A DNA stretch of 64,000 nucleotides from Ylistrum balloti (lineage: Eukaryota), in contig NW_026782038.1 in the NCBI RefSeq assembly GCF_031769215.1, positions 310,001 to 374,000 on the forward strand, read 5' to 3'. The position numbers were made by a program, and so were the translations under genes. The notes beneath the pieces were generated by a model. It was not told where the DNA came from and made no database searches. It was given only the letters and a program-made list of their open reading frames with translations. Positions 7,614-41,267 of the stretch are shown here, piece after piece (position 1 is the first letter of the stretch; every line of letters starts with the position of its first letter).

Positions 7614-8487
7614 TCAGCAGCTCTCAAAGGAACACTCCGGGGCGCCATATACATTAAAACAGGAACATTTGTTACCACATTTGTCCACAATAACTGTCTT
7701 TCCAAACGGTATGAAAGTGTTCTGATGACGACAACCTTTTTAAAATAGAAAAAAAGATACTTACATGTAAATAGTACATAGAATCATATTAATCATAAAG
7801 TAAGATTTAATGACTGATGTGAATTTTTCTTTCTTTCTTTCTTTTTCGGAAATATTAACGTCTTCGTTAAATCTTCGAGAAGTGAAATGTTTTAATATCA
7901 ACTGTGTTAGAATTATTTGAAATTGTCATAAGGACTTGTTGGTGAGTGACTTACCTTGTCGACACTGGCATTTAAGGTTGGGGATCCAGTCTGGACACTG
8001 CCAATTGTCAGCGAAAACACACTCTTCACCAGAGGCACAGCCACGGCTGTAAACAGGAGTAACATATTGTCAATTTGATACAGAATTATAAAATGCCAAA
8101 CAGATTCAAGCACGGCTGTATCCAAAATTCAATATCAACCGCTAAGATTAATTACCTTGTACGGCATCGGGACACTGAAGCAGGAACGCGCTGTACCGCA
8201 TTAGGCTGTGTCTGCCAGAACTCTCCTGTCATTGGTCGTACAGTTTGCTGCTGGGACGAAATGGCGGGAATCTGTGGAATTGTAGGAAACTGTGACGTGT
8301 ACGTATTTGGGAAGAGCTGCTGTCCTGGCAACAAGACGCTGGATGTACTTGGGTAAATTATGTTTGGAAGCTTTGAAATGATCATCGGCCCACTTCCTGG
8401 TCTAAATTGATGATACCGGTGAGCACTTATTGGGGCTACCGCCAGAACCAAAGTGACGAGAAACAATAATTCAGTTGATGTACACAT
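7614..8487 (-). CDS. Gene A: secreted 181-aa protein; signal peptide, P/Q/S/I-rich spacer, C-terminal 12-Cys domain
   Basis: join(8487-8156, 8046-7955, 7735-7614), phases 2 and 1, GT-AG. Signal peptide MCTSTELLFLVTLVLAVAPISA. Domain CRTSRGCASGEECVFADNWQCPDWIPNLKCQCRQGCRHQNTFIPFGKTVIVDKCGNKCSCFNVYGAPECSFESC* aligns Cys-for-Cys with B, C and D. Confidence 0.9.
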
Positions 8488-11400
8488 CTTGTTTCTGAGC
8501 TTTAACGAAATATTTGCTACTGCCGTGAAATTAACTCTACAATTGAACTTATTTGTAGAACTTTAAGGTATAGATTCTCAAATAAAGTTGATGTGAGCCG
8601 GTGAAGTGTTGAGACAGGTGTGATGAGATCCGGATTTATTCCATCCATATATATAGGAAATTTCCATTTTGTTTACTTTCGTCATGCTTTCACTAGGTAT
8701 GACAGTCTGGTAATCTCAGGTCATCCACACATGGCCTACGTACATGAAAACCGACATCTATCAATCATCTGTCACGACCGGTCATCGGAGGATAGTCCTC
8801 GACACGTTATTGGCTTAAATTGACCTTTGATATAAATGTTTGTGACGTCGAAACGTACGCTTGTACTTCGACCATTGAAGATTTTTCCCAAATAAGGCAA
8901 ACGTGACCTTTGACACGTGTACCATTTGGCTTCATTGAGATTTAGTTCCAAATATGGTCTTGTAGTACAATGTACTATGAATGACGCATACCGAAGTAAT
9001 GATTTTCGAAATTTTAGCTGGAAAAAGACAGATTTCCCATTCCAAACTCCCAAAAAAAATATGGCATAAGTGATTAAAAACCCCATGAAATGGATATTAA
9101 AAATACTTAACACTTGTAGATGATGTTCTTGTTTTGTTCTTGACGCACAGGCTATTGTTCGTAATTATGGTCACAAAATGTTGTAGGACTAAGCTATATT
9201 CTCAGCTCAGTTTTTCCAATATAACTGATGTAATATATGATGGCTTCTTATATCATTTATTAGAAACAAACAACAATAGCGACCAAAATGTGATTTTATT
9301 TTCACAAGTCAATACCCTGATACTGAATTAATCGATATATACCAACAAAGTATGGACATGGCGTTACCTAATGCGAAGGGTTTTGACTGTCTAACCGCGA
9401 TTTTATGTTTTCATATTGGTTGCGTCGATGGCCTAAACCCCCCTCTGTATGAAAAAACAGGAATTTAGCAACTCATAGAAGGATTGGTAGTTATAACTTT
9501 TTTCAACTTACTTGCATACAGCTCGAAGCAATTACATGTTGTAAACTAACGACATTTCCACTCATTTCTTTCTAAACACTTTTCAGTTTAATTCTGTAAT
9601 GACTGTCACTACGGAATCTCTTTAACATTGTCCTTGTAAACATTCAAAAAAGTAAACTCTCGCGTGTTTGAGAGAAATAGTAGATTTACAAAATTAAGTC
9701 CAGAGAGATTTCGTAATGGCGACCATAGCAAAATATGCTGGAAATTGATCGTTAGGGAAAATGGTGTTTTGTATTTAACTGTCGCCTAAGTGACCCGAAC
9801 TGTGAACGCAAGGAGGGCAACGGAAATGAATGCTTCAAGGTTCACCCCATATAATATTTCGTGACTTTAAACATCCTTTCCCCTTTTATAATATTGACTA
9901 CTCCGTGTCTAGTTTTGACAACACGCCAGAAAATGAATAGAATTCATGAAATGATTGATGATGTTTCTGACAACAAGCAGCCCTATTTAGCTCCAATTAA
10001 GCTCGACTTTGAAATCCTCTGATGCAACGAACTTCAAATAACAATTTCTAAAATAAAATATGTAAATAAAACGGATGTCGTGTAATATGTGCTTTGTTAC
10101 TGTTTAAAATCCTCGCTATGATCAAATTAGTGAACTTAGAAAAGTCGTAATGACGATAATGTCAATATCATTACCTGGATACACTATATACCAATGAATG
10201 AAAATGACGTTATCATTGGTTTATTTTTTATTAACAAATACGCTCGTTGCTCGTGGTTGGAGTATTCCTACTCATTTCAGAAATTGCAACCACAAGCTAA
10301 ACTCGAAACGAAAATTAAAGGATATAAAAAATATTACAAGGTTTGACATGCTTGATAATTATGCATTGAAAATATCAACAACGTTAACATGCCTATGAGA
10401 CATGCCTAGCTCCATGTTTACTGGTCACGAATGCGAGTGGTCAGCTAAGGTCAAAGATGACAAATGCCATGCTAATCAATTAAAGCTAGATCATTATTCA
10501 GACACACTGAATCACGAGATTGTGAAATAAACACATTGATGTCGTGTTTTCCTGTCAGATGAAACCAACCACTACGATACCGATCAGTCTTTACTGTTTA
10601 CCCCAGAAATATTCCAATTGTCAACTCAACACAACATCAACTCTTAAAAGTACGTGATTGATCAGTCCAATCATCCACATTGTTCTTGGCTTTATATGAA
10701 GCAGATTTATGATTTTACATGATTTATTTTTTATTCTATATGAGATTTGATTAAATGAGTCTTAGATTTTTCACTTACCTGCCTTAACGGATCGTGCAAT
10801 GGAAATTATGTATAATGATATGTTAATGATTACGATGTTCAGTGACATTCCAGTGATTAGGCAAGGATAGCAATCTCTCGACCTTATTTATTGCTTAATT
10901 TTCGAGATAACCGGGCACGCAGTTTTGTGTTAATATAGATTTCTATATGAAATACAACATACGTAACACTTGATTAATTAAATAAAGCAGGGTCGTGCTC
11001 AGTAAGTTACAGTGACCAACTTTTTATTAAATGAAACGCGTAGTCACAAACTAGTGAAGTATTAACAATTGTGCATTGAATGAAAGAAAATAGTGCTAAT
11101 ACCGCTGTCTTTGACGCAACTTTCACAGATCAGGAATCTCAACAAACAGTTTTGAGCAAATTCTTACATCGGAGTGGGAACACCATATGCCATGTCATTT
11201 GTAGTGTTAGATATTGTAAAGCATCAACTTATGATACCAGCTGATTCTGATATAGCTGAAGGTTCATATAAGTGTAATTTAATTCACTCTCTAAGAATAT
11301 TCTGACGTACCCTAGCCTTCACAGACCCGACGTTTCAATTAGTTAAAAACAGTACCATCCCAAAGCGGTGGTTTTACCGTCCAATGACGTAGAATGTCAC

Positions 11401-12123
11401 CACTGCCAAAAAAGGAACAGAACTTTCAAAAATATATCTAGCCAATTCCATCATGTGATTGTAGGTAGGTTTTACCCATTTAATCCATTTGGAGACCGGG
11501 GTGTAGAAGGAATTCATGAAATAGATATGTTTTCTTCTTCTTTCTTAAATGTTCTTCGTTTTTAATTATCTAATTGTAGATTTAAAGGAACAGGCACCAA
11601 GCGAATATCAATGTGTGTTCTAGATGTATTTTATAATCTGCTGGACATGAACACCATTAATTGTTAACCGAGAAACGTTTCGATGTCGCAACGCTAGTTG
11701 GTGAAAAGAATAAGCATACCATAACAGGCAAGATTTCCTTTCACAGCACGTGCGCAACTTTCGTGCCTAATTGAACTGCATCAGATACTGACGAAACCAA
11801 TCGTGTTCTGTAACGTTTTAATTAACAAGACTCGTTGAAAAAAAAAATCGCTTGCAAAGTATCACGGCAGTGTCCTATTGGGATCAGAAGCATTGGAAAG
11901 ATTCAAAGTTAAACATATGAAAAGTATTTCAACGTTCTTTCACACTGTCGTAAATTTCGGCGGAGATCTTTTTGAATATTTTACTTGTAAATTTAGTGAA
12001 GCAAGGCGTTAGAAAAAACATTTAAACAGTGTGAAGAAGATTGACATTCGAGAATTATCAACCTTCTTAGGAATTTAATGTGATAAAATTGCTATTTTTT
12101 TTTTTTATAAATAACTCCCGATC

Positions 12124-12335
12124 TGTAGAAGATTAGAGTGTGACGTTTCGATGACAACACAAACACCTTCATCTCATAGTACAATCAGTAGAAGATCAGA
12201 GTGTGACGTTTCGATGACTACACGGTCACTTTCATCAGATAAATGGCCAGTGTGACTCGTACTAGCACTGACGTATAGATTACATACTGGTCATTTGTCT
12301 GATGAAGGCGACAGTGGTGTCATCAAAAGTAACTC
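12124..12335. repeat. Small foldback/direct-repeat element with three degenerate hammerhead-ribozyme-like cores
   Basis: Minus strand 12238-12205 reads CTGATGA-A-AGTGAC-CGTGTA-GTCATC-GAAAC-GTC. A second minus copy lies at about 12175-12141 and a plus copy at 12299-12331. Arms 12239-12251 and 12286-12298 are inverted copies. Confidence 0.55.
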
Positions 12336-13655
12336 ATTAATCTTCCACTGGTTGTGTTATAAGTACCTCTATTAACTTTCGACCTGATTTTCTTTTTCCT
12401 GAAGTTTTTCGTAAATGTCCCTTTCTTGCTACATCATCTTTGGCCTCTAAGTAGAACAATCCGAAGGTTATGAGTTCTTTCTACAAACTGTGATAACTAA
12501 AGTCATTGAAATGGAGCTGTGTGCGCAGTGTCTGGTGCTAAATGTGCCCGCTGACAATGTATTATGTCCGTTACCGGTAGGGTGTCCTGCTACCCTTTCC
12601 AGATTATGACATCTCAGTGTGATGACACAGTGGCCCATCCTGTGATGGACTGAAATGAATTTCAATCAAACACCCACATAAACACAAATGTCATACTCAT
12701 CCAACACTGTTCAGCATTTCAGTATTACCAGGATGAACTGGAAGAGGGACACGAATCACCTGGATCATACTATGTAATAATGGAATAAAAACCCTGTTTC
12801 ATATTTATGAAGCATTTTATTATAAAAAGCAATAATTTAATACAGAAATTGATATACAATGGTATAAGGATTTCATATACATGATATATCTTAAAGGTGT
12901 CATTACATTGACATAAATACGTAAATTAATGGGGACACAACGCTATGATAATTGAGCACAATAGGTAGCACATATTAGGATTCCATGATTAACAGGGACA
13001 CATTATGTAAAAGACATGAAACTTATGTCCAGTTTCTGCCTTTTATGTTTAATGAATTAGTAACCACGCATCCTACAGTCGCCCTCGCTTTCAATTTTTC
13101 TTTTCTCACTTCACACGTCGATGCTTTCATAAACTTGTTTTGAAAACTAAACATCCAGAACTAGTGACACTACCAGACCTCTTTTCAATGTTACAAACAG
13201 TCAAAATTAACTCATTCCGTGTCTAGTTGAATATCTGTTGCTACCATTAACTTTTTTAAAAATATTTTGCTGCATTTACCGTGCATTTCTAAAATTGTTA
13301 TATGTTAAATAAATTAAAGTTCTTCGCTCTCCGTCCGAAATCTCACGTCAATATTCAATTGTAGCAGTTCACATACTAATATTCAATATTTTTACTCTCT
13401 ATTCTTGAGTTTAATTTCCATTGTGCGGTGAGTTTCTGTTCTATTTGAATTTCAGGACTATATAGTATTTACGACATTTTTCGTTTCAACCAAACTTGTT
13501 AACACATTTGATTAATAAGGAAAGTTTGTGGTTAACAGTATAAATAATGTCAAATAGTTTTAACCTCAGACCGTATCTTTGAATCGTCCCTTTTCATGTT
13601 AGATAATAATGTTTTCTTCCTTGTTTTTTTTCTAACAACCGACATCGTTTGAAGA

Positions 13656-15473
13656 TTAAACCAAAGGAGATTCTGTCGAAAGTTCTCTAGTTGTAGTAAC
13701 GTCTGTATTTGAAATTCCGGTAACGTTGTTTAGTTCATCCCCAGGTTTTTGAGAGACAGTTTCTGGTAATGAAGAATCGTTTACAATTTTTTCCACCACA
13801 TTCATAGGTTCGATAAATTGTTGCAATTCCGGGACTGTGACACGATTTGAGGAACTAGCTGAAATTTCAAATCCGCTGTCGATCTTTGCTGTAGGAAGGC
13901 TATCGAATGCGCCTTGGAACCCTCCGAGATCAGCATCTGATGAAACTGTTCCCGTAATGGAAATTGTTGGATCTTCTGGTTTACACATGCGTTGTGTACA
14001 TTCAGCCTAAAAATGAAACAGAAAATGACATGAATAGCTTAAGTATAATCAATGATAATTTCATAAAGTGAAGGTATGCTACGAAAATGCAACGTATACC
14101 AGTTAACCTTAAGTACCATTTTTAGTTGTCATGTTCATCATCTAATAAATATACACGGAGAACCTTTGTGAAGTAGGTCATTCATATTATGAAATTCGAT
14201 ATACTTCACGACTTTAAAAATTACAATTTGATTTGTTATCATTTTGATATGCAAATGATGGAGTTTATAACTTACCGCGCCATACATGTTATTACAGGAG
14301 CACGTGTTTCCGCAAACGTCGATCGTGATAGATCCACCCAGAGGGATAAAGGTATAGTCGAGGCGACATCCCAGGCGACACTCGCACGCAACGGAGGGAA
14401 TGTAGCTAGGACAAATGTATTCCTCCGCAAATACACACTCAGCTCCAGTATCACAACCACTGAAGACAAGAGAAATAGAACATGTCAACTGGCATATCTT
14501 TAAACATGCTGTAATGTAAGCAGTTTCATTCAATACTTAATGAGTACATAATAATAGTCTCACTAAAAGCATTTACTGGCAAATAGTAGGAGTGATTGTT
14601 GGTTTGTTTTTTAACATAAAATACTTACGTCTGATGGCAGCTCGAGTTCTGTTTTTCTCCTTCGACTCCGGGGAAAATTTTGTTAGTGTCAGGTAATCCT
14701 ATTTCAGGAAATGTCATGTCGGGAAGTCCCGTGTCAGGGAGGTTGGAATCGGATGCATCAGTAATGATCACTGGAGTTATAATTGGGAGCTCCTCTCCAT
14801 TACCGGGATCTGTAACGACTATGGAACTGATTCCTGTGTCAGATGATGGAGAGTCTGGTGTTGTTGCTTGATCTCCGTTTTTGTTTTGTTCTTGAACGAC
14901 TGGTTTCCCATCAGCATCCACATCTTTGGTCTTAAAGCCTATACCGGTCTCGACTCCCGAAATCAGTATTTTGTCTCCAGTATCAAACATGGAGTTGATG
15001 CCAAGATTTGGGAATGTTGGTACGGAACTAGCAAAATCTGGTGTCCCAACAACATTCACATCACTAGGGATAACTCCAGCTTCTCGGGGAACAACGAATC
15101 CCGTATTTACGATACCGCTGTTTTCATGGTTGATGGTACCGCCAGTAGTGGGGAAAACATACCTCTTATTCAACCCAAGGTCACTTGAAGGGACTATAAA
15201 GTTTGGTGTTACCGTCGCTTGCGGATGAAATGTATTTATGTTAGCAGGAAAGCTTGGTCTGTAGAAAGGTCCATGGCCTTTTGTTGGGTAGATAGTCCCC
15301 ATACCTTTTCGGACCATATAGGTGGGATACCTGTGAATATAAATTCGATGAGGAATGACAACACGACGGTGGATGAGCGGTGATACAATTTTCCTTCGAT
15401 GATATATGATATGTCCACAACAGTCGGAAAGGATTCCAAGTACTGCTACAGCGAACAACAGAATGGTATTCAT
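13656..15473 (-). CDS. Gene B: secreted 459-aa protein; signal peptide, His/Arg-rich head, acidic P/T/D region, 12-Cys domain, acidic S/T tail
   Basis: join(15473-14629, 14459-14276, 14006-13656), phases 2 and 0, GT-AG. Signal peptide MNTILLFAVAVLGILSDCCG. Domain CHQTGCDTGAECVFAEEYICPSYIPSVACECRLGCRLDYTFIPLGGSITIDVCGNTCSCNNMYGAAECTQRMC, then a 108-aa tail ending STESPLV*. Confidence 0.92.
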
Positions 15474-17539: not shown

Positions 17540-17840
17540 ATGAAAAGAGCACGAGAACCGATATACAACCATGTGTTAATTTCATCTTCATATTACATAT
17601 TAGATACCTACCAAAATTACGAAGAGTTTTCACATTATTGTTTGAAAACGATTGAAATAATTTGAAAACAAATGGTCGATGATAAAAGTTTGGTTTGATA
17701 TGTAATGATATTACTTCTAAATATGCTGGACATAATAGTATGAAATGAGTTTTATCCTCAACTTCGTTTTCGTCACTCAGCGTGCACAGTCTTTGATTTA
17801 TATGAAGGCCATGAAATCTTCCAGTCTCAATATACATGTA
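17540..17840 (-). mobile_element. LINE ORF2 3' end fragment (C-terminal Cys/His knuckle), decayed
   Basis: YIETGRFHGLHINQRLCTLSDENEVEDKTHFILLCPAY matches the IETGR..R.C..C....EDE.HF...C motif at the end of LINE ORF2 proteins. Decayed sequence probably continues to about 18230. Confidence 0.75.
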
Positions 17841-22704: not shown

Positions 22705-22720
22705 TTGACCCGGGGTCAAT
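22705..22720. promoter_or_regulatory. Perfect 16-bp palindrome TTGACCCCGGGGTCAA upstream of gene C
   Basis: Self-complementary, with two RGGTCA-type half sites (TGACCC-CG-GGGTCA). It lies about 155 bp upstream of the TATA box. Function is inferred only. Confidence 0.4.
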
Positions 22721-22874: not shown

Positions 22875-22881
22875 TATAAAA
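22875..22881 (+). promoter_or_regulatory. TATA box of gene C
   Basis: TATAAAA at 22875, initiator-like GCAGTC about 26 nt downstream, ACCATG start at 22944. Confidence 0.65.
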
Positions 22882-22943: not shown

Positions 22944-25561
22944 ATGCTATTCCGTGTTGGACGTTCGCTGTTTGTCGGATTCATATTAAGTGTATCTATT
23001 GCATTGGTGCATGCACAAGGAACTACAACAGGACAACAAAATGGCGTCTCGTTTCCGTCCCAACCAATGTTCTTAGGTCAAGAAACTGGCGCTAATTCCG
23101 GACAAACAGGTTCCAATGGAATGCAAACTCCTAATCTCTTTACTGCTTTCAGTGGTCAATCTCCGGTCACCGTACCAGAAACGACCAATCAGTCTCAATT
23201 TGGACTTGCAACAGTGCCTGTAACAAGCGCCGGAACAACCAATGGTCAGATGACCAACTCTATAGTTCCAAGCACAACGACGGGTACAACTGTCAATACT
23301 GGATTCACTGGTCAGGCTCAAGGAGTAAACGGCTTTCCACCTGCTCCTCCAGCCATAAACTCCGTTTTTCCGACACAAACTGGTGTTCAACCATTTCCAG
23401 GACAGCAAAACAGACCCACCGGGTTCCCAGGACAACCTGCCGTTCAGTCAATGTTTCCTGGTCAGACAGGCCAGGCAACATCAGGACAAATTCCACTATT
23501 TCTAGGACAGCAACCAGGTATGCAGACAGGTTTTCCCGGACAACCAGGCGTACAACCCGGATTTCCAGGGCAACCTCGTCCATCCGTTTTTCCCACAACC
23601 GTTTTTCCCGGACAAGCACAGCCATTTACACCTCAGAACACAGCTGCTTTTCCAGGACAAATAGGAGTTCCGGTCCAAGCCGGAAGTACTGACCAACAAG
23701 GAGCGACCCAGCAGACCGGAAATGCAATTAGTGGAACGAGTCAAATTGCGACAACCAATGGTGGTCAACAACAATCTGGAATTATTACTGGTCAAGGCCA
23801 AACGTTCATCAATGGACAGACAGGACAACAGCCGGGACAATTACCAGGACAGCAAATCCCTGGTGGTCAGTTTGGACCTCAACCTGGACAATTTGGACCA
23901 CAAACCGGACAATTTGGACCCCAGACCGGCCAATTCGGACCTCAAGCTGGACAATTTGGACCAAATGGACAGTTCAGACCCCAGACCGGACAGTTTGGTC
24001 CTAATAATCAGTTTGGTCCAAATCCATTTAACCCCTTCGGACAAAGGCCGGGCCAGTGCCATACAACGTAAGTATTTAAAAATAATTAAATTATATTAAC
24101 ACGCAATGTGCGGCACAGGACTGATGTAATTAAACAACATCAGACGTAAAACACTGTATTATTTAAAATCACGAAGCATTTATAGTCTTGATTAAAAGGC
24201 TAAACAAAGGCTATGTTGTGTTTCAAGTTGTATTCTATAGGGACGTAGTAAAGTTTAATTACCCTCCCGCTGTTTCATGGTTATTAGGAACATTCTGATA
24301 GAGTGGCCAACCTTTAACTTGGTCATAAGTATTCATAAATTCAAGACCTGCAGAAATTAAAACAAAATGTACACAGAATAAACTGATAAAGCTAACTGAA
24401 AAGTAAAACAAAGATTTAAGAGACTGAAACATTCATTTAAAAGTGATTCAGCTAAAGAATATTATATTGAAATACATTATTTATGAATTTTAGAAATAGA
24501 TTTGGGAATTGCTTTATATATGTCGGAAACTTGTGCCCAGATTCATGGTATAGACATACAGAGGTCCAAAAACGATGCGAGTGTTTTTTCTTAAAGTTTG
24601 TCCATTCAAAACATGTTAAAAGAACGACGATATATGTTGTAGCTTCATTAAACAAGATTAATGGTAATCATTGGTCATTGTATTTCTAAATACAACACGA
24701 GTTGTTCATTGTTCTCAGAATAATAAAACAAGGTAAATGATTGATTCGTTTGTTTATTATAAGAATGTTCATGAATGTTTGTATTGCCTTAACGAGTTAT
24801 AAAAACAAAATATGACAAATTACTTTGAAATTTCAATATTATCCTATATTTGTCGTTTCAGAGGTTGCCCAGGTGGATCTCAGTGTGTTTTCGCACCAAC
24901 TGGTGCCCACATGTGTCCAACTTGGATCCCAATTCTGCCCTGCACTTGCCGCCAGGGATGCCAGGCACAGAACCTGTTTATCCCTCTAGGCCAGTCCCGT
25001 CAAATCGACAGGTGTGGAAACACGTGTACCTGTAATAGTCCCGATGGAACGGTAAGTTAAACTTATATAAAGCCGTAATATATCTGATTTTTTCATAAAT
25101 TGTTTTCTGTTAATGTGAGTGTATTACGATGGTTTATTTCCATACCAAAATTTCAAATCTGCTAATATTTTAACTTGCACGTGTATCTTTGTGTACGTTA
25201 TCATAAAATGGTTTTGACGCCCAACAATGAACAATTAATCATTACTAGCCGTCTCTATCTTTTATCTGGTACTAATATACACACGAGTGATCATTAAACA
25301 CCATTTACCTAAGTCTTAGCCATATTTCATGTTTCCTGACGGATCATAACGTCTCAGCACTTACAGGTGTACAGCGGTATGACCCCTGGCACTACAAACG
25401 TTTCGTAACTCCTTCCGGGCATGCGCGATACTAATTTCTTTAATGTCTTCCTCTTGTAGCCTGCGTGTACGATGATGGCATGCCCTTCTCCACAACAACA
25501 ACAGCAACAGCAAGGACAACAAGGACAGCAACAACAGCAACCGCAACAACAGGGAAAATAG
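22944..25561 (+). CDS. Gene C: secreted 471-aa protein; signal peptide, G/Q/T/P/F-rich repeats, 12-Cys domain, poly-Gln tail
   Basis: join(22944-24067, 24862-25051, 25460-25561), phases 2 and 0, GT-AG. The true start is the ACCATG at 22944, not 22833. Signal peptide MLFRVGRSLFVGFILSVSIALVHA. Domain CHTTGCPGGSQCVFAPTGAHMCPTWIPILPCTCRQGCQAQNLFIPLGQSRQIDRCGNTCTCNSPDGTPACTMMAC, tail PSPQQQQQQQGQQGQQQQQPQQQGK*. AATAAA at 25643. Confidence 0.93.
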
Positions 25562-27420
25562 GTCAATATGCAACCTTATTAACGTCACGTGTTCTGCAGT
25601 AAACTTCATTAACGATCTTCAGCTACAGAGAACCAAAATACCAATAAAGATGTAACTAGCCTTCACAAATGATAGTGTGTGCTTTTTCCACACACAAGAG
25701 AAAAAAAGAGTTCAACATTCGGGTCAGTACTTTGCCAAAGACTACAAATGACAAAGTGAAGAACATTACCCGGCTGTAGTGTTTGTTTTCTGTATGGTTG
25801 ATCTGTATATTTTATAATGAAGGAGTCAAAGTCCCAAGTAACAGTCCAATTTCGTAACTGCAAACCTAAGACCTAAGAAATGTTTTGTTCAGATGAACAA
25901 GTCGAATTCAATAATAAACCCCAAGAATTGAAGTGTTCCGATTGGACTGGTCGGTCATGATCATTTTATTTTCTATAGTTTTAAGTCCAACTGAGGATTT
26001 TTCATTCTATAAAAAGGACCAATGTGACTTTGTGTGAAAATGTGAGTGTAGCACGCGAATTCGGAAAGTAAGCGGGAGAAAGTCGTGTTAGGAACCGAGA
26101 GAGATAATAGTGTGACGACACACATGGAATGGGGAGTTTTTGAATGTGTGTCTTTTATAACAACTATCCCATATTTCATGTATTTTAGTAACTAAATAAA
26201 TTGTTACGTTATTTGTTGTTTTGTCGTGTTTTATTTCAATATTGCTGACAAGTATAATCACCTTCAAAATCAGAATCCTTCTTATCAACATGCTGCGAAA
26301 TATGCATAAAATCCCATCAGTCAATTGGACTTGGATTAAAAACCTTGAAGGCCCGTGTTTAAATGTTACTGATTTACAATGGACACCCCGTATCAGCACA
26401 CGATGAATTATTTCGTCATTTGGTGGTATCATCACAAGTGAACATCGTTTAGAAAACATTGATTAAATATCGGAGAAAATATGTAAATTTTATACGTAAT
26501 GTCTATCAATATGAACGTATTCGTGTGTATGATATGCTTTCTCCATTCAGGAAATTAAAATTTTACTTCAATGGTAAAACTATGAACAGAGAGTATCGAC
26601 ATGTACAAGATATATCGTGTTTGTGGGGAAAATGTGTACAATAACATGACGAATTCTATGTGTCGAAATTGGTTGATTGGGTACAACTTTAAAACAATAC
26701 TTTATTGGAAACGAACATATATCTATTCGATTGTACCATTGTTGTGCTGCTTGTGGTACTTTGTGCTCATAGACAGATACCTGAATCGGCGCCGACATTT
26801 TGGTTTAGTCACGTGTGTGCTACTTAAAAGTCACGTGGTATTCCTACCCTGATAATCAAACATATCTTTCAAAGTAATGTGAATGGGGAAACAGACTAGG
26901 AAAAGCACACAAAAGAAAAGAACGGATTGAAATCCTTGTTGCATTACTTTCTAACAGACACTTGTTGACATACACAAAGGCAATGAACCATTTGGGTCGA
27001 TTTGTTGCTTTGACTTTTGTCTTTTAAGAACTTCAAACCTACAATGTACATGATCAAATCGCCCACAGAGATATCCTCATTTCGATGACGTAGAGATGAA
27101 AATATCGAAATCCTTGATCTTTTGCCTTTTGGGAAACTGTTTGCAGTAAGTGTTAGCGCAAAGATCCGGTTTTTACCACGATGTTTTGGTAAGACAGTCT
27201 GAACTATCTTTACTGTATCTTTACGTGTTAGTAACTGTTTACCACTCTAGAGTAACACAACACAAACCTTTTCGGGGTTTAGATCTATATAAGGAATAAT
27301 CTGATTCAATCCGCTCGTAGTGTCTTACAATAAAACAGTATCTACATACATTGCTATCATTAAATGGGGTAGGTCGCCTATTAATTACGAATTGAACCTT
27401 GACCAGTTGGGTGTCGGAGA

Positions 27421-27930
27421 ACTGACCGTTAAGTGATAAATAGGTCCTATCAGATTGAACCAATCACAGAACGCCGTATGTTAAGTGATAGTGATGTTCT
27501 CACAGATTGAACCAATCACGGAGCAAAGATTGTTAAGTGATAGATAGGTCCTATCAGATTGAACCAATCACGGAGCGCCGACTGTTAAGTGATAGAGATG
27601 TACTATCAGATTGAACCAATCACGGATCACCGAGTGTCAAGTGATAGAGATATACTATCAGGTTGAACCAATCAAGGAGCACCGAGTGTCAAGTGATAGA
27701 GATGTACTTTCCGATTGAACCAATCACGGATCACCGACTGCTAAGTGATAGAGAGATCCTATCAGACTGAACCAATCACGGAGCGCCGACTGCTAAGTAA
27801 TAGAGAGGTCCTATCAGAATGAACCAATCGCGGAGCACCAACTGTTAAGTGATAGAGATGTACTATCAGATTGAACCAATCACGGAGCACCGACTGTTCA
27901 GAAATAGAGAGGTCCAAACAGATTGGTTCT
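27421..27930. repeat. 52-bp minisatellite, 9 copies plus partial inverted end
   Basis: Consensus TTAAGTGATAGAGATGTACTATCAGATTGAACCAATCACGGAGCACCGACTG. GAACCAATC at 27457, 27509, 27561, 27613, 27665, 27717, 27769, 27821 and 27873; inverted GATTGGTTC at 27921. Confidence 0.95.
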
Positions 27931-31140: not shown

Positions 31141-33493
31141 ACAACCTAGATAAGGTAATAACATGACACCCACTCGGGTAAATACTGCCAATGAGCTAGC
31201 CTGACCCCGTGCATCTCATGGAATGAGGCTGAGCGATAGGAATGAGCACGACATATCACTTTGAGACTTTGGTATGTTACGGCTTGAGGACAGAATTCAT
31301 TTTCTTCCTTAGTTGGGCTGGAAATAAAAACCGTCAAAGTGAAGGCCAAGATATACATACAAGAGAATCAAATATTTTGTTTGAGGAAATTAATATAATT
31401 TTTTTATCGCATTTTACAATCATCCAATTGTGGCACCAAGTATATTTCTGACAAACTACCTGTAGTTCAATGTATTGCGAATAATTCCTTAAGAAAATAT
31501 TTGCGATCTGTGTAAACCTTACCAATCAATCAATTCAATCAATGGGAATGGTTATGCTAGTGATACTCCGTTAAGTATCAAGGTTTTGTTGTGCTCGAAT
31601 TACATTTTTATTTCCGTTAATATGCTGTCTAGTACACAGTTTTGATGTCCAAACAACTACTGGTGTTGTACTCTTTCTCAATATGGTACAGACAGGTACT
31701 TCTTTGATATCAAGAAGTCGAAACATTCAGATTCATCTTGTACAAAACATTACAAACTATTTTGTAGATTCTCCTCGTAGTAGTGTGTGACCTCCTAGAA
31801 ACGAGGAATGTCGGGCATCCGTCGATTATGCCTACCATCAACGTCCATAGCGCGTGTCCAAAATCCTCACAAATGTCACTTATCGGCCATCGGCACGTCA
31901 AAGTGGCTTTTCTACATCGGATCTGAGCATATATTTGCCAATTACTAATTACCTGCGGTGCCAAAAGGAAGCAGAAATGTGTATCGTTGTTCTGATATAC
32001 GTCTTTATGTAACAATGGCTTTCAACTTTTCAGGTCAACCTCATAAAGCATCAGTAGTGTAATTACAGGTGTAAAACTACCACCTTGGCCGGGTAAGACG
32101 CGTTAATTTTATCATTTTCTGTAAGTGGCAGTGTGTTTTACGACGACATGATGTCACATACGCTTCAGGTCAACTGAAGTCACCGCTTTCGAATTCTTAT
32201 TAACAGTGACCCAGAGAGGAACTCTCGCTTAGATATATCTGGCAATTTACACGGGGAAAGTTGTAGATCCAGATAAAGCGCATAAAATGAAATAATTATG
32301 ATACATGTAATTTAAAAATATAAACAAAATAAAAAGGCTAAGTGAGACAAATATCTACATATTCTTGAAACTCCATGTCAAAGTACTTGTTCTATCTCGT
32401 CCGCACAAATGTGCTAACTATTCCGCGTTTAAACATTGTGGCATACTGGACTACAATGTCCAACTATACCTGTTAAATCACATCGATTTTCTAGGACATG
32501 AGAACAGTTTCTGTGTTAAAAAACACAATCTTAATGCACGGACGTCTTCACCTGTCTTACTATTTGTTTTCTTAAACTGACTTTATACATAAATCTAAAA
32601 TCAATTTAACATACAAGTAAATCATTACAAAGACAGTTAACTGAAATACCTCGAAATTAATTGTGACGTAACGTACACCTTTCTCATGAATAGACAGGTT
32701 TTTAGTGAGTATCTAAGGTAGCAGCGTAGAGGACACCTGGGAATTCTCGCCAGAAAATCCCAATAAACTAAATAGAAAAAACCCAGGTCATTTGATTTCC
32801 GAAATGAAAAACATGATTGTGCAAAAAGTGAACACCTTGCAGTAATTGAGCTAGGAATTAAACATGTACTGAAATAGTGATAGTGTGAGTCATAAGAATC
32901 TTCCTGAAATTGGTCATGTGGATATTTTAAAAGGCTTGAGATGTTGGTTATGAAAGATAAGATTATGAAAGATCTCTCAAGACGTTTAGCTCTTGTACTT
33001 GTAGAAATATGTATATCTGTAAAATCAGAGAGCCAGTTATCGAGATATCCCATCCTTATTTTTGCTTATTATATATTTTGTTGACACTACTTTCTCCACA
33101 AACTTTGTTATATTTACGTCACTCAGCTGTATTGTTTAAACAAAACACTATTATATTGTGTACGATACCTTTAAATTACTTTAAATTGTTTTGTTTACAA
33201 TGGTTTATTACCTTTTGTTTACAACATTTTATCATATTTTGTATACAATCTTTTTTTTTTAACTTTTTTTTTTATTTTGTTTTTCAAGATTTTACAAAGG
33301 TATGCAACACACGATATATACTAGACTCACATACACATACACACCCTAGCACACATCACACTACACCCATGTACACTCACTCAAAACATGCACTCATTAT
33401 TTCCTACTCTTTCCTCTTTGCTGACATGACATACAATGTACTACTGTGTTTCATTCACACGCCCCTATAATAATACAAACTCAATGACTGCTG

Positions 33494-33534
<41 letters not shown>

Positions 33535-33760
33535 GTCATCATCATCACCATCGTCATCATCATCATCATAGTTATCATCATGATCATCGTATCATCATCA
33601 CTTCATTATCATGATCATCACCATATCGTCATCATCATCATCATCATCATCATCACTATCATATCATCATCAGCAGTAACACATATTCAGCATTGTAATC
33701 ATCATATCATCATCACCACTTCATCATCAACCTTTTATCCTCATTATCACATCATACACT
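33494..33760. repeat. (CAT)n microsatellite, perfect then degenerate
   Basis: Long CATCATCAT run that produces the poly-Ile/His ORF 33436-33762. Confidence 0.95.
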
Positions 33761-33869
33761 GATCAACAACAGAGCTGTTTATTATTATTAGTGTTTTGCC
33801 TCATCATCATCTATTCACACCTAATCCCCAAACTTTATTCAAAATTATATGTTTTCAATTTTGTATACA

Positions 33870-34225
33870 ATCTTTATTTACAGCACTTTTTTATCTTTTG
33901 TTTACAATACCTTATTGTCTTTTGTCTAAAATACTTTATTGTCTTTTTTCTATGATACTTTATCTTTTGTTTACAATACTTTATTATATTTCGTCTACAA
34001 TGCTTTGTTATATTTTGACTGCAATACTTTATTGTATTTTGTCTACAGTACTTTGTTATATTTTGTCTACAATACTTTATTATATTTTGTCTGCAATACT
34101 TTATTATATTTCGTCTACAATGCTTTATATTTTTTGTCTGCAATACTTTGTTATATTTTGTCTACAATGCTTTGTTATATTTTGTCTGCAATACTTTATT
34201 ATATTTTGTCTACAATACTTTATTA
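33870..34225. repeat. 24-bp minisatellite, about 15 copies, with a decayed relative at about 33130-33300
   Basis: Unit ATATTTTGTCTACAATACTTTATT. The 8-aa periodicity shows in ORF 33874-34143 (KYCRQNII). Confidence 0.9.
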
Positions 34226-34999
34226 TGGCAAGTAGTTATTTTTATTATCTTACACACCTGATGAAGACTTGCGTTATAATACGAATGATTCCTCAGCATT
34301 GAGAATGCTTGATTCACTACGTTTCTCTTCCCTATATTCTGATTGACAAAAAGTCGGTTGAGCATCAGCACACTGGTTTACCAGGGGAATATTTACAGGC
34401 GGTGTGTAACTTTAACAGTTTCAGCTGTACTTATTTCTCATGACGGAGATTGTTGACGTAATAAACATGAAGCTAGTAGGATAACAGGCACGATATCGCC
34501 CTCGTAGCAGCGTATAAATCGTTGATTGTCGTCGCTTTGTTTTCGAAAAAATGGACAATAACGTGACATCTGGATCATATTTTATTTCTGATGGAAAGTA
34601 ACATTCTCTTTATTGGGTGAATGAATATACTTTTTCTCAACAAAGAGACCAAAAACTTTCAGGAAATACGTCGCCAGCCATATCTGTGTCCTTTTAAGCT
34701 GATTGTCAAGCTACTGTGCGTAAAAAAAATCGGGAAAAGTTGTACTTTTATCAGTCGGTAAATGTCATCAACCGATTCATCGTACACGCCACCCAATTTT
34801 CACTTCAGACGATTCTGATCACAATCGGCATTGTGACAGATCGCGTGACAGCGAGAGCACGCGCAAAAATGTATAAATACAATAAATAGATAAACATGAT
34901 TAAACCAAGCGTGACATTATCCCTCGCGCCCCACTGTTTAAAAGATATACAGTCATATAAAAATTTCAACAAGTTTAAATTATATTTGTTATTTTTAAT

Positions 35000-35570
35000 C
35001 GTTACATACAAAATATAGAAATTGAGAACTTCTTCTAGGGTACTAGCTTAATGCCTGTACAAAGTTTTGAGTACAATGTAATTACCTTGAACTGATCTGA
35101 AAAAAAACTTTTTTGATCTGGCCTATCTGTTTCCATGGTATTCAAATGGAGAGATTCCCAATATCAAAAGTTATCACTAGCTTAATAAGTCTTAAAAGGT
35201 TTGAGCAATTACCTTGAACTCTTTCAGAGCACTGGTCCAGAAAAACTGAAATTTGTGACGAGGGTTATCTATTTCCATAGTAACAAAAATGCTTTAACTA
35301 GGGCACTAACCTAATATATACAGAAAGTTTTGAGGAGTTGAGTAGAATGATTTCGAAGTTGTAGCTTGGAAAGGAAAGTAAACGCTAATTTTTGGCTATG
35401 TTTCCATGGTAACAGAGAAAACATGAAAAATGAAATGTCGCCAAAACTGTTGTTCAGTTGAGTTTAATGGTGTTAAAGTTATAGCCCGGAAAAGCCCTCG
35501 GACGAACGGACGGACGTACGGAGCCCAAACTTATATCCCCCGCAAACGCGTTTCGCAAGGGATAATAAAA
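35000..35570 (+). mobile_element. Non-autonomous interspersed element (Helentron-associated/HINE-like) with internal 130-140-bp subrepeats
   Basis: Subterminal GGACGAACGGACGGACG microsatellite followed by terminal hairpin ATATCCCCCGC-AAACGCGTTTC-GCAAGGGATAAT. Internal subrepeats carry GTTTCCATGGTAAC-like motifs at 35129, 35271 and 35400. Confidence 0.55.
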
Positions 35571-36943
35571 ACAAATACCGGTACAGTAATCTCTCAGTAT
35601 TGCTAGCTGACTTTCGTTTGTTATACAAAAATGTGGTTTTTTTCGCACATCCAAAAGATCGGCAGCTGCTTTCATAGGGCGCTATATTGTATTTATTGTT
35701 CTTCCTACTTGCACTATTTTACTGAGATAAAATTTCTAGATGCAAAGAAAAGTTATTTGAAATATGTATTTTCGATACAACAATTATGTAGTTCCGTAAT
35801 GCACGTTGCTGTTTTCCAGAAAATTCACCTTTCCTGCAGTTCACAAATTTCAAAATAAAACATCAATCCTTTCATCGATGTTTTGTTGTTTAATCTGAAA
35901 TACCACAGTGTTTTTAGTATTCTTAGTATTGACGTTTGCCTTATACGAATAGTTCAGCAAATGCACAAAATAAAAACGACCAAGTGCAAATACCTTAGGA
36001 ACACATATTACATTTTGTTTGTGTATTTGACATTTGCCCTGATGTTGGCACGTAAAAAAGATTTGAAAGAACCACCGATGTGTTCTTTTTCGGGAAAAAT
36101 ATACCGGAATAGTGACCCTCTTTTTATTAAGTCAACACGAGCGATAAGCTGAGAACATTTGCAAATCCGTCTTTATCTGATTTCAGATCTTAAAATGCAA
36201 AATACAAAATATATCGGTTTGCTGTAGTATCACAAAATGATTTAGTAAATTTTCTGACGATGCCTAGCTTTTACTTAGATAGTTAAAGATTTCGCCCACA
36301 CTAACGATATTAAAGTTTCAACCAAACATGAACTCTGATGTATTGTATTAAGTAATTCATTATTATAATATGTTATAATATTATGTTATGTAAAAAAAGG
36401 AATGTAAGTGCCTACCGGGCGCGGTTTACCTAGCTGGGCGTTTTCCAATTTGCGGTGAAAAAATCGTGCCGCTAAGAGAGGACAAAATATCGCGATGAAG
36501 ATATTTAGAAAAAAATCTATAAATCAGCGCAATAAACGCTTCACTCTTACTTACTAGGCGGCAGGCCTTGTTACGTATAACAAATATCAGTATTATATAT
36601 ATACCGACCGGTAGGAGCTCGCAGCATCGTGCAGTTGACAGCGACACTTTTGTACAAAACGAGTCCGTGAAGAAGAAAAGATCATTGTTTCGGGGACTTG
36701 ACCATCGGTCATTAATCTGTCACTTCGGACACCAGCCTGCAGGTGTTATCTGATTATGGGACAGTTGAGCCGAATGAACGGTTTTATAGGCATCAATAAT
36801 TTTATAGTCCATAACTGCTATTTATCACATCTAGCTTGTTATTTGCTTATCATTTACGTAGGAGGACGTGCAAGAGGTTAGTCAGGGACTTGAGCAGTAG
36901 TGTTCATTCGGACTAGGACTGGGCAAGGTATCCAGCAGTAACC

Positions 36944-39900
36944 ATGATGAAATCAATGGTTTCGTTAGGATTGTGCTGTATCCTATTCTCAATCATCACC
37001 ACTACATACGGTCAACCTCCGTTCCCGACTTTTCCTCGGTTTGGTCCTCCACCCAGGATTATAAGAGGATTTCCTGGTCCTCCGGGGTTCGGTAGAATCG
37101 GATTTAGACCGCCTTTGGGCAGGCCAGCATTCATTGGAGGGGATATTTTTGGCCCACCGCTGGTAGGTAGGCCAGGGATCGGAGGTGGCCCAATTTTCAC
37201 CCAACCAGGCAATGCCATATTTAATGGAAATCCATTTGTCCCGCCGTTTTCACCTGTAAATGTTGTGAATAATGGTTTGCCAGGAAATGTGGGATTTCCG
37301 ACAAACACGGTTGTTCAAGGAAATTCAGTAGCAAACACAGGAATAGCGCCAAATTTTGGAATCGGTACCGCAAACACTGGAAATATAGGTACGGCTGGCA
37401 ACACAATTGGGAACAACGTATTCGGAACACCAAACACTGGACCCAACACAGTAATCACACAGGGGCCACCAGCAACGGGCACTGGTGTTCCGGTTAATGT
37501 AAACACCGGCTTCCCTACTAATTTAAACACTGCCTTCCCTGCACCTGTTAACACTGGCTTTCCTGCAACCCTAAATACAGGTTTTCCAGCACCCTTACCG
37601 AACACAGGTTTTCCTGCACCTGGTTTGAATAGCGGATTTTTTGCTTCGGTAAATACCGCTATTCCAGGAACTTTACCAAGCACAGGTGCCGCGGTTCCAG
37701 GGTCCACAAATGTTTTCGGCGGAACTAACACTCTAACCGGAGCCGGGGTTCCGAGTGGAACTGGAACATTGACAAATCAATTTTTGTTGAATAACGGAGT
37801 TCCTGCTTTGGCTCAAGTAAACAGTTTAGGAACACAGGTGACCAGCAATGTACAAACAGATGGAACTCAGGATAATATGGTCCTGGCTGCCGGAAACTCA
37901 TTCGCCAATCGATTTACCGTCACAGGTGAAGGTGCTTCGCAGACTGGAACCTTCGGTGGTGAAACTGGTGGCGGTACCTTCCAGGACCCAACATCCGGCC
38001 AGACCATTTCAGGAAACACATTATTGAATACCGGTTTGGATAATGCTGTTCCGGCTGTTGATACTTCAGGAGCAGGCGCAGGGACAGGTGCAACAAGCTC
38101 TGGGATCCAGGGAACCGAACTTCCTTCAGAAGTGGCCGTAATTGGAACAATCGGCACGACGGATGCGGGAACTGTTGATCCAAACGCTCTCCCAACAACA
38201 GCTGTAGGATCAAAATGCCAAGCAACGTAAGTTATCTTATCAGTATTTAGTCATTAAGTATATATGGGGTCAAAGGTACCTAATTTTATACACATTCACA
38301 CTGCAACAGTTTGAATCGCTGAGCCAGTTGAAACATAATCTGTAATTTTTATCTCAGCTGTTGATGGACAGTTAGTAAACACAGAGAAGACAAATCTCCC
38401 TTCCTCGTGACATGATTTTTGTCGGAGTTCGTAGAGTGTCATGGCTTAATATTCTAGAAATGTTAAATAGTGAGTCCTAAATGGCAGGAGAAGCTTGTGG
38501 AACTTCATCACGTCCTGAAAGTTATTACTTTTTATAAGCAAGCCTGCTTTTTGAAATGAAAAGTTAAATAAGTTTACTTTATATTGTACACGACAAACGA
38601 AAGTAATTTGGGACTGCCAGGATACCAGTCATCATAAAAAAACTGATATGTCGTTCTCTGTTTTAAATCAGACTTAAGCAAAACCTATTAAAATTTGTTG
38701 ACCCATGAGAATTTCAGAAACTGTTTTTCTTGTATTTACAGTGGATGTTCAGCCGACCAGCAATGTGTGTTTGCTGGGGAGTACCCCTGCGCCATGTACC
38801 TAGAATCACTTGAGTGTCGCTGTCAGGCAGGTACGTAATTGATTTTTTATAAGTAATCATCGGTGAAATAGTCATCTTTACAGAACACAAGACTTGGTAA
38901 CTCGAATATCTTTAAAAATTATGATAAATACCACTTTGGAACTGGAATCCAGATGGTTTGTTTAATATATATATAATACGCCATGTTTTTTAAGTATATT
39001 TGATATAATGTTATGTAACATGTTATACACTTGTTTCATTTCCAAGATCTATAAGATACTGAGATATAGCTAATAGAGCTAACCCAGAAGGAGGTGTGTT
39101 AACCTCCTTTTTATCTATGGTTTTTTATCATTTGTTTATTGTATAAACTTTTTATACAACAAACAGCTTATAGTGTATTTCAGCCAGAGGTTTCTTTCAC
39201 TTGCCGTTTCATTTAAATGATTTTTTTCCTGAAACACATTGTTTCCGTTGTTAACTGCATCCTCTTGGCGACAGAAGTCGTAATCTGACATTATATCTTA
39301 TAGCAGAAAGACCCGGTCAATTTCCGATCGTTGAATTATAACATCTTTTTGTCTTATCTAGGGGATGTAAAATGGAAATATTAATATTACTGTCTCTTTA
39401 ATTCTTATCGATATAATGTTAATACTATTTAGCCAATAGTGCAAATAGATTTAGTAGTTCCAGCACATTTAAAAACCAAGTAAATTGTACAGTCTCGTCA
39501 TGTATAGTTGCTCCTCTACCTCATAACATTGAGGTAAGCCATACCCCCCCCCTCACACACACACACACACACCCTCTACTTTTAAAGACACTTCAACATG
39601 GTGCTGTGTCTTCATTTGATATATTGATTGAGCTGACGTATGACTTCACTATGTCGCAGGTTGCCGTGTGATGAACTTCTTTATTCCCGAGGGTCAGTCC
39701 CGGCAGGTCGACAGCTGTGGTAACGTTTGTTCGTGTGACCAGACAGGAGAGAACAAGGGAACGGTTAGTATAGTAAAAACAAGAGAGTTCCATGTTTGTG
39801 TTCGTTCGGAGTTAATATGTCAGGATCGCGTCATTGGCATGGATATTGCGTTAGTTATATCAGTAAGATGATAAAGGTGACGCGCCATTGTGCTGGGACA

Positions 39901-41267
39901 AAGGATGGATGCCGATTGGATCTGATCATGCATGTTGAGTAGGGAAGGTGTCGTTGGAGTGGAGTTGTATCAGTGAGATTGTGTCGTTGAAGTTTGGATG
40001 GTGTCGATAAGGTTGGGTCGTGTCGATGGATTTAGGTTGTGTCGTTGGAGTGAATCGTGTCTTTATAGTGAGACTGTGTCTATTGGGCGGGTTTTGCCTC
40101 GATGGAGTCAGGTTGTATCGGTGGTGTGGGGTTGTGACGTTGTTGTAGGGTTGTGTCGGTGATGTGGGGTTGTGACGTTGTTGTAGGGTTGTGTCGGTGG
40201 TTTGGGGTTGTGATGTTGTTGTAGGGTTGTGTCGGTGGTGTGGGGTTGTGATGTTGTTGTAGGGTTGTGTCGGTGGTGTGGGGTTGTGATGTTGTTGTAG
40301 GGTTGTGTCGGTGGTGTGGGGTTGTGACGTTGTTGTAGGGTTGTGTCGGTGGTGTGGTGTCGTGACGTTGTTGTAGGGTTGTGTCGGTGTAGTGAGGTTG
40401 TGACGTTGTGTAGGGTTTGTGTCGGTGGTGTGGGGTTGTGACGTTGTTGTAGGGTTGTGTCGGTGGTGTGGTGTCGTGACGTTGTTGTAGGGTTGTGTCG
40501 GTGGTGTGGGGTTGTGACGTTGATGTAGGGTTGTGTCGGTGGTGTGGAGATGTGTTTTTGTTTGATCAAGATCAATGGCGGTGTTATCATATGATAGGGC
40601 CACCGAGGGACACATGATAGTGACATCACCTTTGCATGTCATAACCTACATCTCATTCAATGCTGAGCGCTTAGCAGTGCTATTTGAAAGAATTTGGTAG
40701 GTCACGGTTTGGGGACAGAAAACAGTCATTTTCACTCGAAAGGACGCCAACCAACAGGATCGAAAGTGAGATAGGAGAGAATTTTGAAGAAAAGAAATGA
40801 AGAAAACGATCCCAAATTTATTTGGCTCTGATGATCAAGCAATATGGACAGGGGCCATTTTCCGTTTTTAGGCTTTGTTTGGGCGGAAAAACAATTATGA
40901 TGGTGCTCTGATGACTTTGGAATTTCCTTGAGAGTAAAGTTTGTAAATATCATGGGTAGTGTGCCCTTGACGAAGTGGACGAGTGTGTAGTTTGCTTCAT
41001 TAATTTATGCGATCTACCTATGTACATCAATAATCCATATGTGAATGAAAATATTGCACGTTTGTAACACATGTATGTTTGTTGTATAATACTTACCACT
41101 TATTACCCCTGACCTCTGATTGTCACCATCACCACTGGTCAAGATGGACACGGTCAGTATGCATTTCTGATGACCAGTCACATTCACACATTATGTCTAT
41201 ATTAAACATACATTATTTTATCGTCCGGCAGGCGCGGTGTACGACGATCAACTGTCCACAGCAGTAG
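36944..41267 (+). CDS. Gene D: secreted 503-aa protein; signal peptide, R/P/G/F head, long uncharged N/T/G/P region, acidic linker, C-terminal 12-Cys domain
   Basis: join(36944-38226, 38742-38830, 39660-39763, 41232-41267), phases 2, 1 and 0, GT-AG. Signal peptide MMKSMVSLGLCCILFSIITTTYG. Domain CQATGCSADQQCVFAGEYPCAMYLESLECRCQAGCRVMNFFIPEGQSRQVDSCGNVCSCDQTGENKGTARCTTINC, then PQQ*. Confidence 0.93.
40100..40550. repeat. 38-bp G/T-rich minisatellite (about 12 copies) in intron 3 of gene D
   Basis: Unit GTAGGGTTGTGTCGGTGGTGTGGGGTTGTGACGTTGTT, period 38 (40145, 40183). Decayed flank from about 39960. Confidence 0.95.

Follow-up and report, generated by a model that had tools for sequence, protein, structure and literature searches.

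A bivalve-restricted family of secreted proteins that joins one conserved twelve-cysteine domain to four different low-complexity chains in the scallop Ylistrum balloti

Four complete genes, designated A to D, which encode secreted proteins sharing a hitherto undescribed domain of 12 cysteines, were identified in a 64,000-nucleotide (nt) stretch of DNA from the scallop Ylistrum balloti (contig NW_026782038.1, positions 310,001 to 374,000 of the forward strand), referred to below as the window. Together with their relatives they constitute a real, undescribed and bivalve-restricted family of secreted proteins, in which the same small domain is attached to low-complexity chains of quite different chemistry. 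The genes were built by six-frame reading and inspection of splice sites in the window, whose character is eukaryotic (about 35% G+C, spliced genes and minisatellites). Genes A and B lie on the minus strand and genes C and D on the plus strand, and every intron possesses a GT donor and an AG acceptor and keeps the reading frame. The products of A, B, C and D comprise 181, 459, 471 and 503 amino acids (aa), respectively, each with a typical signal peptide at the N-terminus. The first coding exons of 332, 845, 1124 and 1283 nt are all of length 3n+2 and thus end in phase 2, and the break falls three to four residues past the first cysteine (Cys1), at C-[HQR]-x-T. The architecture given in the original prediction is therefore true for all four genes: there is a signal peptide, and the first exon is large, of low complexity and terminated by a phase-2 intron just past Cys1.

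The gene models agree with independent annotation to different extents. The spliced model of gene A is 100% identical to the 181-aa RefSeq "uncharacterized protein" LOC132546915 of Ylistrum balloti, and that of gene B is identical to RefSeq LOC132546883 of the same species. The C-terminus encoded by the last exon of gene D, only 36 nt long, is matched by the Argopecten orthologue (P0004). The last exon of gene C was placed only by phase, acceptor site, cysteine pattern and a mussel homologue (P0012), with no support from a transcript or an annotated model, and the Mizuhopecten C model (P0005) has a different end that is devoid of Cys11 and Cys12. An explanation of the four genes as pseudogenes or annotation artefacts was rejected in view of the clean splice sites, the domain identity of 90–99% between genera, the RefSeq models and an oyster complementary DNA (cDNA). 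The exons are listed in Table 1.

Table 1. Coding exons of genes A to D, in positions of the 64,000-nt window
Feature	Position	Strand	Content
Gene A exon 1	8156..8487	-	Signal peptide and 85-residue P/Q/S-rich disordered part, Cys1 near the end; phase-2 donor
Gene A exon 2	7955..8046	-	Cys2-Cys6, N-terminal half of the domain; phase 2 to phase 1
Gene A exon 3	7614..7735	-	Cys7-Cys12, VWC/TILa-like half; stop codon
Gene B exon 1	14629..15473	-	Signal peptide, basic His/Arg-rich stretch, acidic D/T/P-rich disordered part, Cys1
Gene B exon 2	14276..14459	-	Cys2-Cys10 undivided; intron ahead of Cys7 lost
Gene B exon 3	13656..14006	-	Cys11-Cys12 loop, 108-residue acidic S/T-rich C-terminal tail, stop codon
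Gene C exon 1	22944..24067	+	Signal peptide, 349-residue nearly uncharged G/Q/P/T/F polymer, Cys1
Gene C exon 2	24862..25051	+	Cys2-Cys10
Gene C exon 3	25460..25561	+	Cys11-Cys12 loop, poly-Gln tail, stop codon
Gene D exon 1	36944..38226	+	Signal peptide, R/P/F/G-rich stretch, G/T/N/P/F-rich disordered part, Cys1
Gene D exon 2	38742..38830	+	Cys2-Cys6
Gene D exon 3	39660..39763	+	Cys7-Cys10
Gene D exon 4	41232..41267	+	36 nt: Cys11-Cys12 loop, stop codon

The shared domain, which follows the low-complexity first exon, is 73–76 residues long in the four proteins. Its predicted spacing, C-x4/5-C-x5-C-x7/9-C-x8-C-x-C-x3-C-x17-C-x3-C-x-C-x8/11-C-x4-C, is exact in all four genes, each of the four domains contains CVFA, FIPxG and DxCGN, and a six-frame motif scan found exactly four copies in the 64 kilobases (kb). 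The paralogous domains are 41–52% identical to one another, and even the pair that had diverged most among those tested (A and the Argopecten orthologue of D) gave a BLASTP E-value of 2e-18; the homology among the domains is thus judged to be real and not a chance resemblance. With clean gene models and significant domain matches, the claim of four paralogous secreted proteins built on one common Cys-rich domain stands. Among the scallop genera compared, the domain is 90–99% identical, as against 52–79% for the low-complexity parts, which carry many insertions and deletions. The loop between Cys11 and Cys12 differs between paralogues and is constant within each orthologue; the TQRM loop of gene B is identical in the four genera compared. 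The mature proteins A to D contain exactly 12 cysteines, any further ones being confined to the signal peptides. Because no thiol is left to spare, intermolecular disulfide cross-linking is unlikely, so that of the "cross-linking or docking" function originally put forward, docking is plausible and cross-linking is not supported. In the 182-aa A-type proteins of oysters (including P0019 and P0063), Cys1 and Cys3 are both absent and a Tyr occupies the Cys3 position, which suggests that Cys1 and Cys3 are joined in one disulfide and that this disulfide is dispensable.

The extent of the family was determined by searching a domain profile (alignment A1) against 1.84 billion protein cluster representatives. 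Thirty matches were obtained at E <= 1e-3, including 16 at E <= 1e-10, and 28 were left after removal of two bacterial repeat proteins (P0027 and P0029), which were matched in many short stretches and are regarded as spurious. Every remaining match whose source was looked up comes from a bivalve, with five orders represented in all: scallops (Argopecten, Pecten, Mizuhopecten and Ylistrum), oysters (Saccostrea and Crassostrea/Magallana), Mytilus (five species), Pinctada, the unionid Sinanodonta and the venerid Mactra. No gastropod, cephalopod or non-mollusc protein was found among the 1.84 billion representatives. The named database entries are all "uncharacterized" or "hypothetical", a few of them with the automatic UniProt label "VWFC domain-containing" or "EGF-like domain-containing", and a few other matches are unnamed exon-sized open reading frames (ORFs) from ENA or Logan assemblies. 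A full-length match to a characterised family, which would have removed the novelty originally claimed, was not among the named entries. Two members appear fused or over-extended. In P0014 (Pinctada imbricata KAK3091606), the broken start of one domain is succeeded by another low-complexity part and another domain; P0016 (Saccostrea echinata XP_061195266) continues for approximately 470 unrelated Lys/Ser-rich residues past the domain.

Comparison with known domains was carried out by Pfam scans of all exons of A to D and of 23 family members, which gave only sub-threshold matches to TILa, pacifastin and VWC, all in the half that spans Cys7–Cys12, and to EB. TILa (PF12714) was the commonest, with 10 of the 23 members at E < 1 (best 0.0016); on exon 3 of gene A it scored 20 bits (cut-off 27; E = 7e-4) and covered model positions 1–39 of 55. 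The best score of VWC (PF00093), which matched one of the 23 members at E < 1, was 14.9 bits (E = 0.033) on the same exon, against a cut-off of 27.6. The EB match was on exon 2 of gene A (E = 0.012). No EGF family was matched at E <= 10 despite the EGF-like labels in UniProt, and neither VWD, C8 nor TIL was found by Pfam in any exon or in P0001. Sequence searches of the PDB with two profiles yielded only a spurious alignment with RNase 2 at E = 0.3 or worse. Hence the statement that the proteins belong to no recognised named family holds: no Pfam cut-off was reached, no solved structure was retrieved by sequence, and the named entries are "uncharacterized".

An AlphaFold model of the domain, based on the alignment of the 23 family sequences, had a mean predicted local distance difference test score (pLDDT) of 84 and a predicted template modelling score of 0.66. 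Over the whole domain, only the bivalve members K1R506, A0A6J8BQE7 and K1QNY2 were recovered from the fold clusters of AlphaFold DB (template modelling score, TM, 0.72–0.84), all others falling below 0.45. Four structure searches aligned residues 40–80 (Cys7–Cys12) only, and the Cys1–Cys6 half matched nothing in them. The Cys7–Cys12 half was superposed on the E modules of FCGBP, MUC5B, VWF and MUC2 with a root-mean-square deviation of 1.5–3.4 A, or 1.5–2.2 A for those of MUC5B, FCGBP and VWF, and 25–30% identity, and on the VWC modules of collagen IIA (2.0–2.1 A) and CCN3. With an hhalign probability of 0.4%, an origin of the two halves by internal duplication was rejected. As modelled, the Cys7–Cys12 half belongs by shape to the group of fibronectin type I (FnI), VWC subdomain 1 (SD1), TILa and pacifastin folds, three-stranded and stapled by disulfides, and the predicted domain is a new combination in which an unmatched three-disulfide subdomain is packed on a subdomain of FnI/VWC-SD1/TILa/pacifastin shape.

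These resemblances bear on two other views of the function. Pacifastins inhibit serine proteases through the loop between their last two cysteines, and the proteins could accordingly be matrix-tethered serine-protease inhibitors, in which Cys7–Cys12 would be a pacifastin-type module, the Cys11–Cys12 loop (C-T-x-x-x-C) the reactive site with paralogue-specific targets, and the polymer an anchor or spacer. Pacifastin_I (PF05375) gave the best single Pfam E-value among the members (4e-4, in two of the 23), the domain pattern CGNxCxC...G...C[TS]xxxC parallels the pacifastin signature, pacifastin structures superpose at 2.5–3.0 A over 40 residues (TM by target 0.5–0.68), and the loop varies among paralogues. 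However, every Pfam match is below threshold and TILa matches more members; the first loop holds 17 residues rather than the 9–12 of pacifastins; the loops SFES, EFDS and TDIP contain acidic or small residues that make poor P1/P1' pairs; the constancy of the loop within orthologues gives no sign of an arms race; and the conserved additional six-Cys half is not accounted for. We therefore consider inhibition quite unlikely.

Still less probable, in our estimate, is a role as extracellular signalling modulators, in which a VWC-like module would bind ligands of the BMP/TGF-beta type, as in chordin, CHRDL, VWC2L/brorin and the arthropod single-VWC proteins, and the polymer would hold the protein in the matrix. 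Outside the family, the closest whole-model neighbours are indeed VWC2L/brorin and kielin/chordin-like proteins (TM by query 0.43–0.51), the protein-language-model neighbours in the ESM Atlas are VWC/VWC2L/NELL clusters, and the conservation of the domain is very high. Yet the VWC model remains far below its cut-off with the score given above, the VWC-defining CCxxC subdomain 2 is absent, four paralogues bearing disordered polymers of 85–400 residues are unlike known BMP antagonists, and all the similarity scores, including those of the language model, lie in a range where chance matches are common.

The low-complexity chains differ from each other as much as the domains agree. Their compositions are those originally described, P/Q/S in A, H/R followed by D/T/P in B, G/Q/F/P in C, and R/P/F followed by N/T/G in D, and the statement that they are not alignable proved right, in that BLASTP with composition correction gave no match at all between them. 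No significant similarity was obtained across orders under this correction either. Without it, C resembles a 246-aa Q/G/F protein of Mytilus coruscus and D resembles a 1799-aa "mucin-17-like" protein of Saccostrea; since these similarities are significant only when uncorrected, they reflect composition alone, and the composition types may be old, though this is no proof of orthology. In a full-length AlphaFold model of A, residues 18–113 have a pLDDT of about 25–35 (below 50) and almost no secondary structure, consistent with disorder of this part. Two short motifs of the A chain, H-x-Y-x-Q-F-R-P at the mature N-terminus and GEFWQ, are conserved among scallops and, in part, in a distant relative; the chain may thus be more than a spacer and contain a functional peptide or a binding site. 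In the product of gene B, a basic His/Arg head is followed by an acidic body and, past Cys12, by an acidic Ser/Thr-rich tail of 108 residues, which was not spelled out in the original prediction and is 67–74% identical in other scallops. The C chain consists of 18% Gln, 18% Gly, 13% Pro, 13% Thr and 8% Phe, with four basic and three acidic residues, and carries 21-nt repeats encoding GQFGPQx; the D chain is similar in composition, with Asn replacing Gln. Both are free of Tyr, which argues against adhesion chemistry of the 3,4-dihydroxyphenylalanine (DOPA) type. A borderline match of exon 1 of gene D to DUF3432 (26.3 bits against a cut-off of 26.7) is probably compositional.

The composition of the chains also invites the view that the proteins are mucin-like lubricants or gel formers of mucus, gill or digestive tract (e.g., the crystalline style), with O-glycosylated T/S/P-rich parts and a Cys domain that would be a reduced TIL-E remnant of a VWD assembly. 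In favor of this, C and D contain 13–14% Thr and 12–13% Pro, a D-like protein of oysters has been named "mucin-17-like" automatically, and the C-terminal half of the domain shares the above-mentioned 25–30% identity with the E modules of MUC5B, MUC2, FCGBP and VWF. On the other hand, the hallmarks of gel-forming mucins are missing from the Pfam results (no VWD, C8 or TIL domain and no C-terminal cystine knot, CTCK), there is no odd cysteine for polymerization, and the compositions of A and B are not mucin-like. We regard this view as unlikely, and it overlaps in part with a docking and material function without excluding it.

The arrangement of the genes and introns is conserved beyond scallops. 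In Crassostrea angulata (CM046785.1, 573205-586181), four domain genes lie in tandem on one strand within approximately 13 kb; they encode products of 1344, 384, 182 and 222 aa, and each first exon ends at C-x-x-[TM] just past Cys1. A 1034-nt Logan cDNA contig of the same species encodes the full 182-aa A-type protein without interruption and aligns with the genome in four blocks. The three oyster introns so defined are located at the border between low-complexity part and domain (phase 2), in a Gly codon ahead of Cys7 (phase 1) and ahead of the Cys11–Cys12 loop (phase 0), and all three agree in position and phase with those of scallop gene D. Scallop gene A has lost the third intron, and genes B and C the second. 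Accession numbers and contigs point to neighbouring family genes also in Mizuhopecten (OWF50896/OWF50897 and LOC110449886/7), Pecten (LOC117330095/104), Argopecten (XP_069125003-125017) and Mytilus (VDI29438/29441 and CAC5385300/303). Furthermore, a 936-nt Joint Genome Institute (JGI) contig from an environmental sample encodes a complete A-type relative and is devoid of introns, so that a member of the family is transcribed and spliced; the sample series is presumably a metatranscriptome of marine eukaryotes, in which case the contig would hint at expression in larvae. The short Logan and ENA contigs are mostly genomic first exons and not transcripts, the only spliced ones being those of one oyster run and the JGI contig.

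In every paralogue, and in oysters as well, a single exon encodes the signal peptide, the low-complexity part and Cys1 together with the closing C-x-x-T. The notion of "interchangeable" polymer cassettes is not sustained by this arrangement, and the simplest history is that whole genes were duplicated and their repeats then diverged in place, because these three elements always lie in the same exon. The genes probably arose by whole-gene duplication before the split of scallops and oysters, and the polymers then diverged in place, for which the 21-nt repeats of gene C provide an example. In the domain tree, 13 of the 25 inner branches are unresolved, and a one-to-one orthology of A to D across orders therefore rests only on composition.

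With respect to function, we favor the reading that the domain is a non-covalent docking module and that the chains provide the material property of a bivalve extracellular material, and we consider it about evenly poised between right and wrong. The folded domain would act as a docking or recognition module, a role that we infer because relatives of the domain bind their partners through an added beta strand or a presented loop. In this way four disordered chains of different chemistry (P/Q-rich; basic-His plus acidic; uncharged G/Q/F/P; and G/N/T/F/P) would be held to a single conserved extracellular partner or to one another. The variable Cys11–Cys12 loop would set paralogue-specific binding, and the chains would give the bulk property, such as that of a gel, a coacervate, an elastomer or a mucin-like layer. 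Several points weigh against this reading. No expression, localization, proteomic or binding evidence for the family was found, the accession and LOC numbers of the family that were tried gave no match in the searchable text of papers, and the shell-proteome supplements checked contain no match to the family. In addition, the correspondence of A to D across orders depends on composition, as described above, and the very high conservation of the domain fits a signalling or an inhibitor role equally well. Text searches with UniProt and SRA identifiers and with six heptapeptides from the domain returned no paper either, and a literature search by species name returned nothing relevant.

A broader version of the docking reading, which we hold to be doubtful, is that the cluster is an ancient bivalve-wide locus of one anchor and several polymers that predates the split of the major lineages. 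The new six-disulfide docking fold, with its paralogue-specific loop, would then direct distinct chains, namely an uncharged Phe/Gln "sticker" chain, a His/Arg-basic plus acidic chain and a mucin-like chain, to set places in one composite material. If true, this would be a compact genetic assembly code for a biomaterial, and the domain would deserve a family entry of its own.

Bivalve materials such as shell, periostracum, ligament, byssus, adhesives and mucus are of engineering interest. Most secreted low-complexity proteins of bivalves are confined to particular lineages and difficult to relate to each other, and lineage-specific families of this kind are common in mollusc secretomes. Here the conserved domain allows a family to be traced through at least five bivalve orders, with cluster and intron positions conserved as well. 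Very different disordered chains on the same folded module constitute a natural experiment in which low-complexity sequence has diversified with the anchoring domain held fixed. The domain has no Pfam entry, and its definition would help to annotate dozens of mollusc proteins now listed as "uncharacterized". Until tissue and binding partner have been established, the finding is of limited value.

Upstream of the genes, a canonical TATAAAA occurs at 22875-22881 (+), 69 nt 5' of the ATG of gene C, and no comparably placed TATA box was observed 5' of genes A, B and D. The 400-nt upstream regions of the four genes have no 9-mer or 10-mer and no motif in common, and a scan of the window for sigma-70 promoters and terminators, which is irrelevant to a eukaryote, remained at background level. 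Intron 3 of gene D contains a 38-bp tandem repeat (40111-40554; 11.7 copies, 93% matches), from which the minus-strand ORFs at 39926-40642 are derived; these were rejected as genes. Between genes C and D lie a 52-bp repeat (27415-27925; 9.8 copies), a (TCA)n tract of approximately 81 copies (33494-33729) and a 24-bp repeat (33885-34226; 14.4 copies). Farther downstream, three large minisatellites at 47600-48196 (27/51 bp), 59951-60941 (48 bp x 21) and 62045-63227 (32 bp x 37.6) are the source of long ORFs on both strands and of a strong excess of C over G at the end of the window; weak Pfam matches on a 348-aa ORF were dismissed as compositional. Near the start of the window, a 176-aa ORF (624-1154, plus strand) contains a reverse-transcriptase fragment of the YVDD type (RVT_1, E = 6e-4, below the cut-off) and is probably a decayed retrotransposon. 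A 275-aa ORF on the minus strand (45473-46300) has a basic N-terminus followed by hydrophobic segments resembling membrane spans and by a Ser-rich tail. It has no Pfam match and, lying just downstream of the cluster, may represent either a single-exon gene or one exon of a gene.

Among known systems, the Cys7–Cys12 half is most readily compared with the E module (TILa) of VWF and mucins and with VWC subdomain 1, with which it shares the six-Cys spacing type C...CxxxCxC...C....C and the shape of a small beta-sheet. It differs from TILa in that the match is partial and below the cut-off, and in that no TIL, VWD or C8 domain stands alongside; a six-Cys module precedes it instead. Proteins of the VWC family possess ten cysteines with a CxxCxC motif and a C-terminal CCxxC motif (subdomain 2). 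In contrast, the middle motif of the bivalve domain is CxxxCxC, subdomain 2 with its CCxxC is missing, and the protein ends at Cys12 or in a tail without cysteine. The likeness to pacifastins comprises six cysteines in about 35–40 residues, the signature CNxCxC...G...CTxxxC and the structural superposition, whereas the longer first loop of 17 residues and the fusion to a second six-Cys module and a long disordered chain set the bivalve proteins apart. With fibronectin type I there is likeness of fold only, FnI having two disulfides as against three here and no sequence similarity. The arthropod single-VWC proteins (SVWC, Vago-type) are likewise small and secreted with a single VWC-related module, but they have eight cysteines and neither a long low-complexity part nor an N-terminal six-Cys module, and none was recovered by the profile search. 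Finally, mollusc extracellular proteins that join low-complexity blocks with Cys-rich modules, such as lustrin A and many shell-matrix proteins, have the same overall plan: a signal peptide, a long and possibly elastomeric low-complexity part and a small disulfide-rich module. Like the present family, they are restricted to particular lineages, have clustered genes and contain low-complexity parts that evolve fast. There is no sequence relationship, and the Cys domain of the present family is far more conserved than is usual for shell-matrix proteins.

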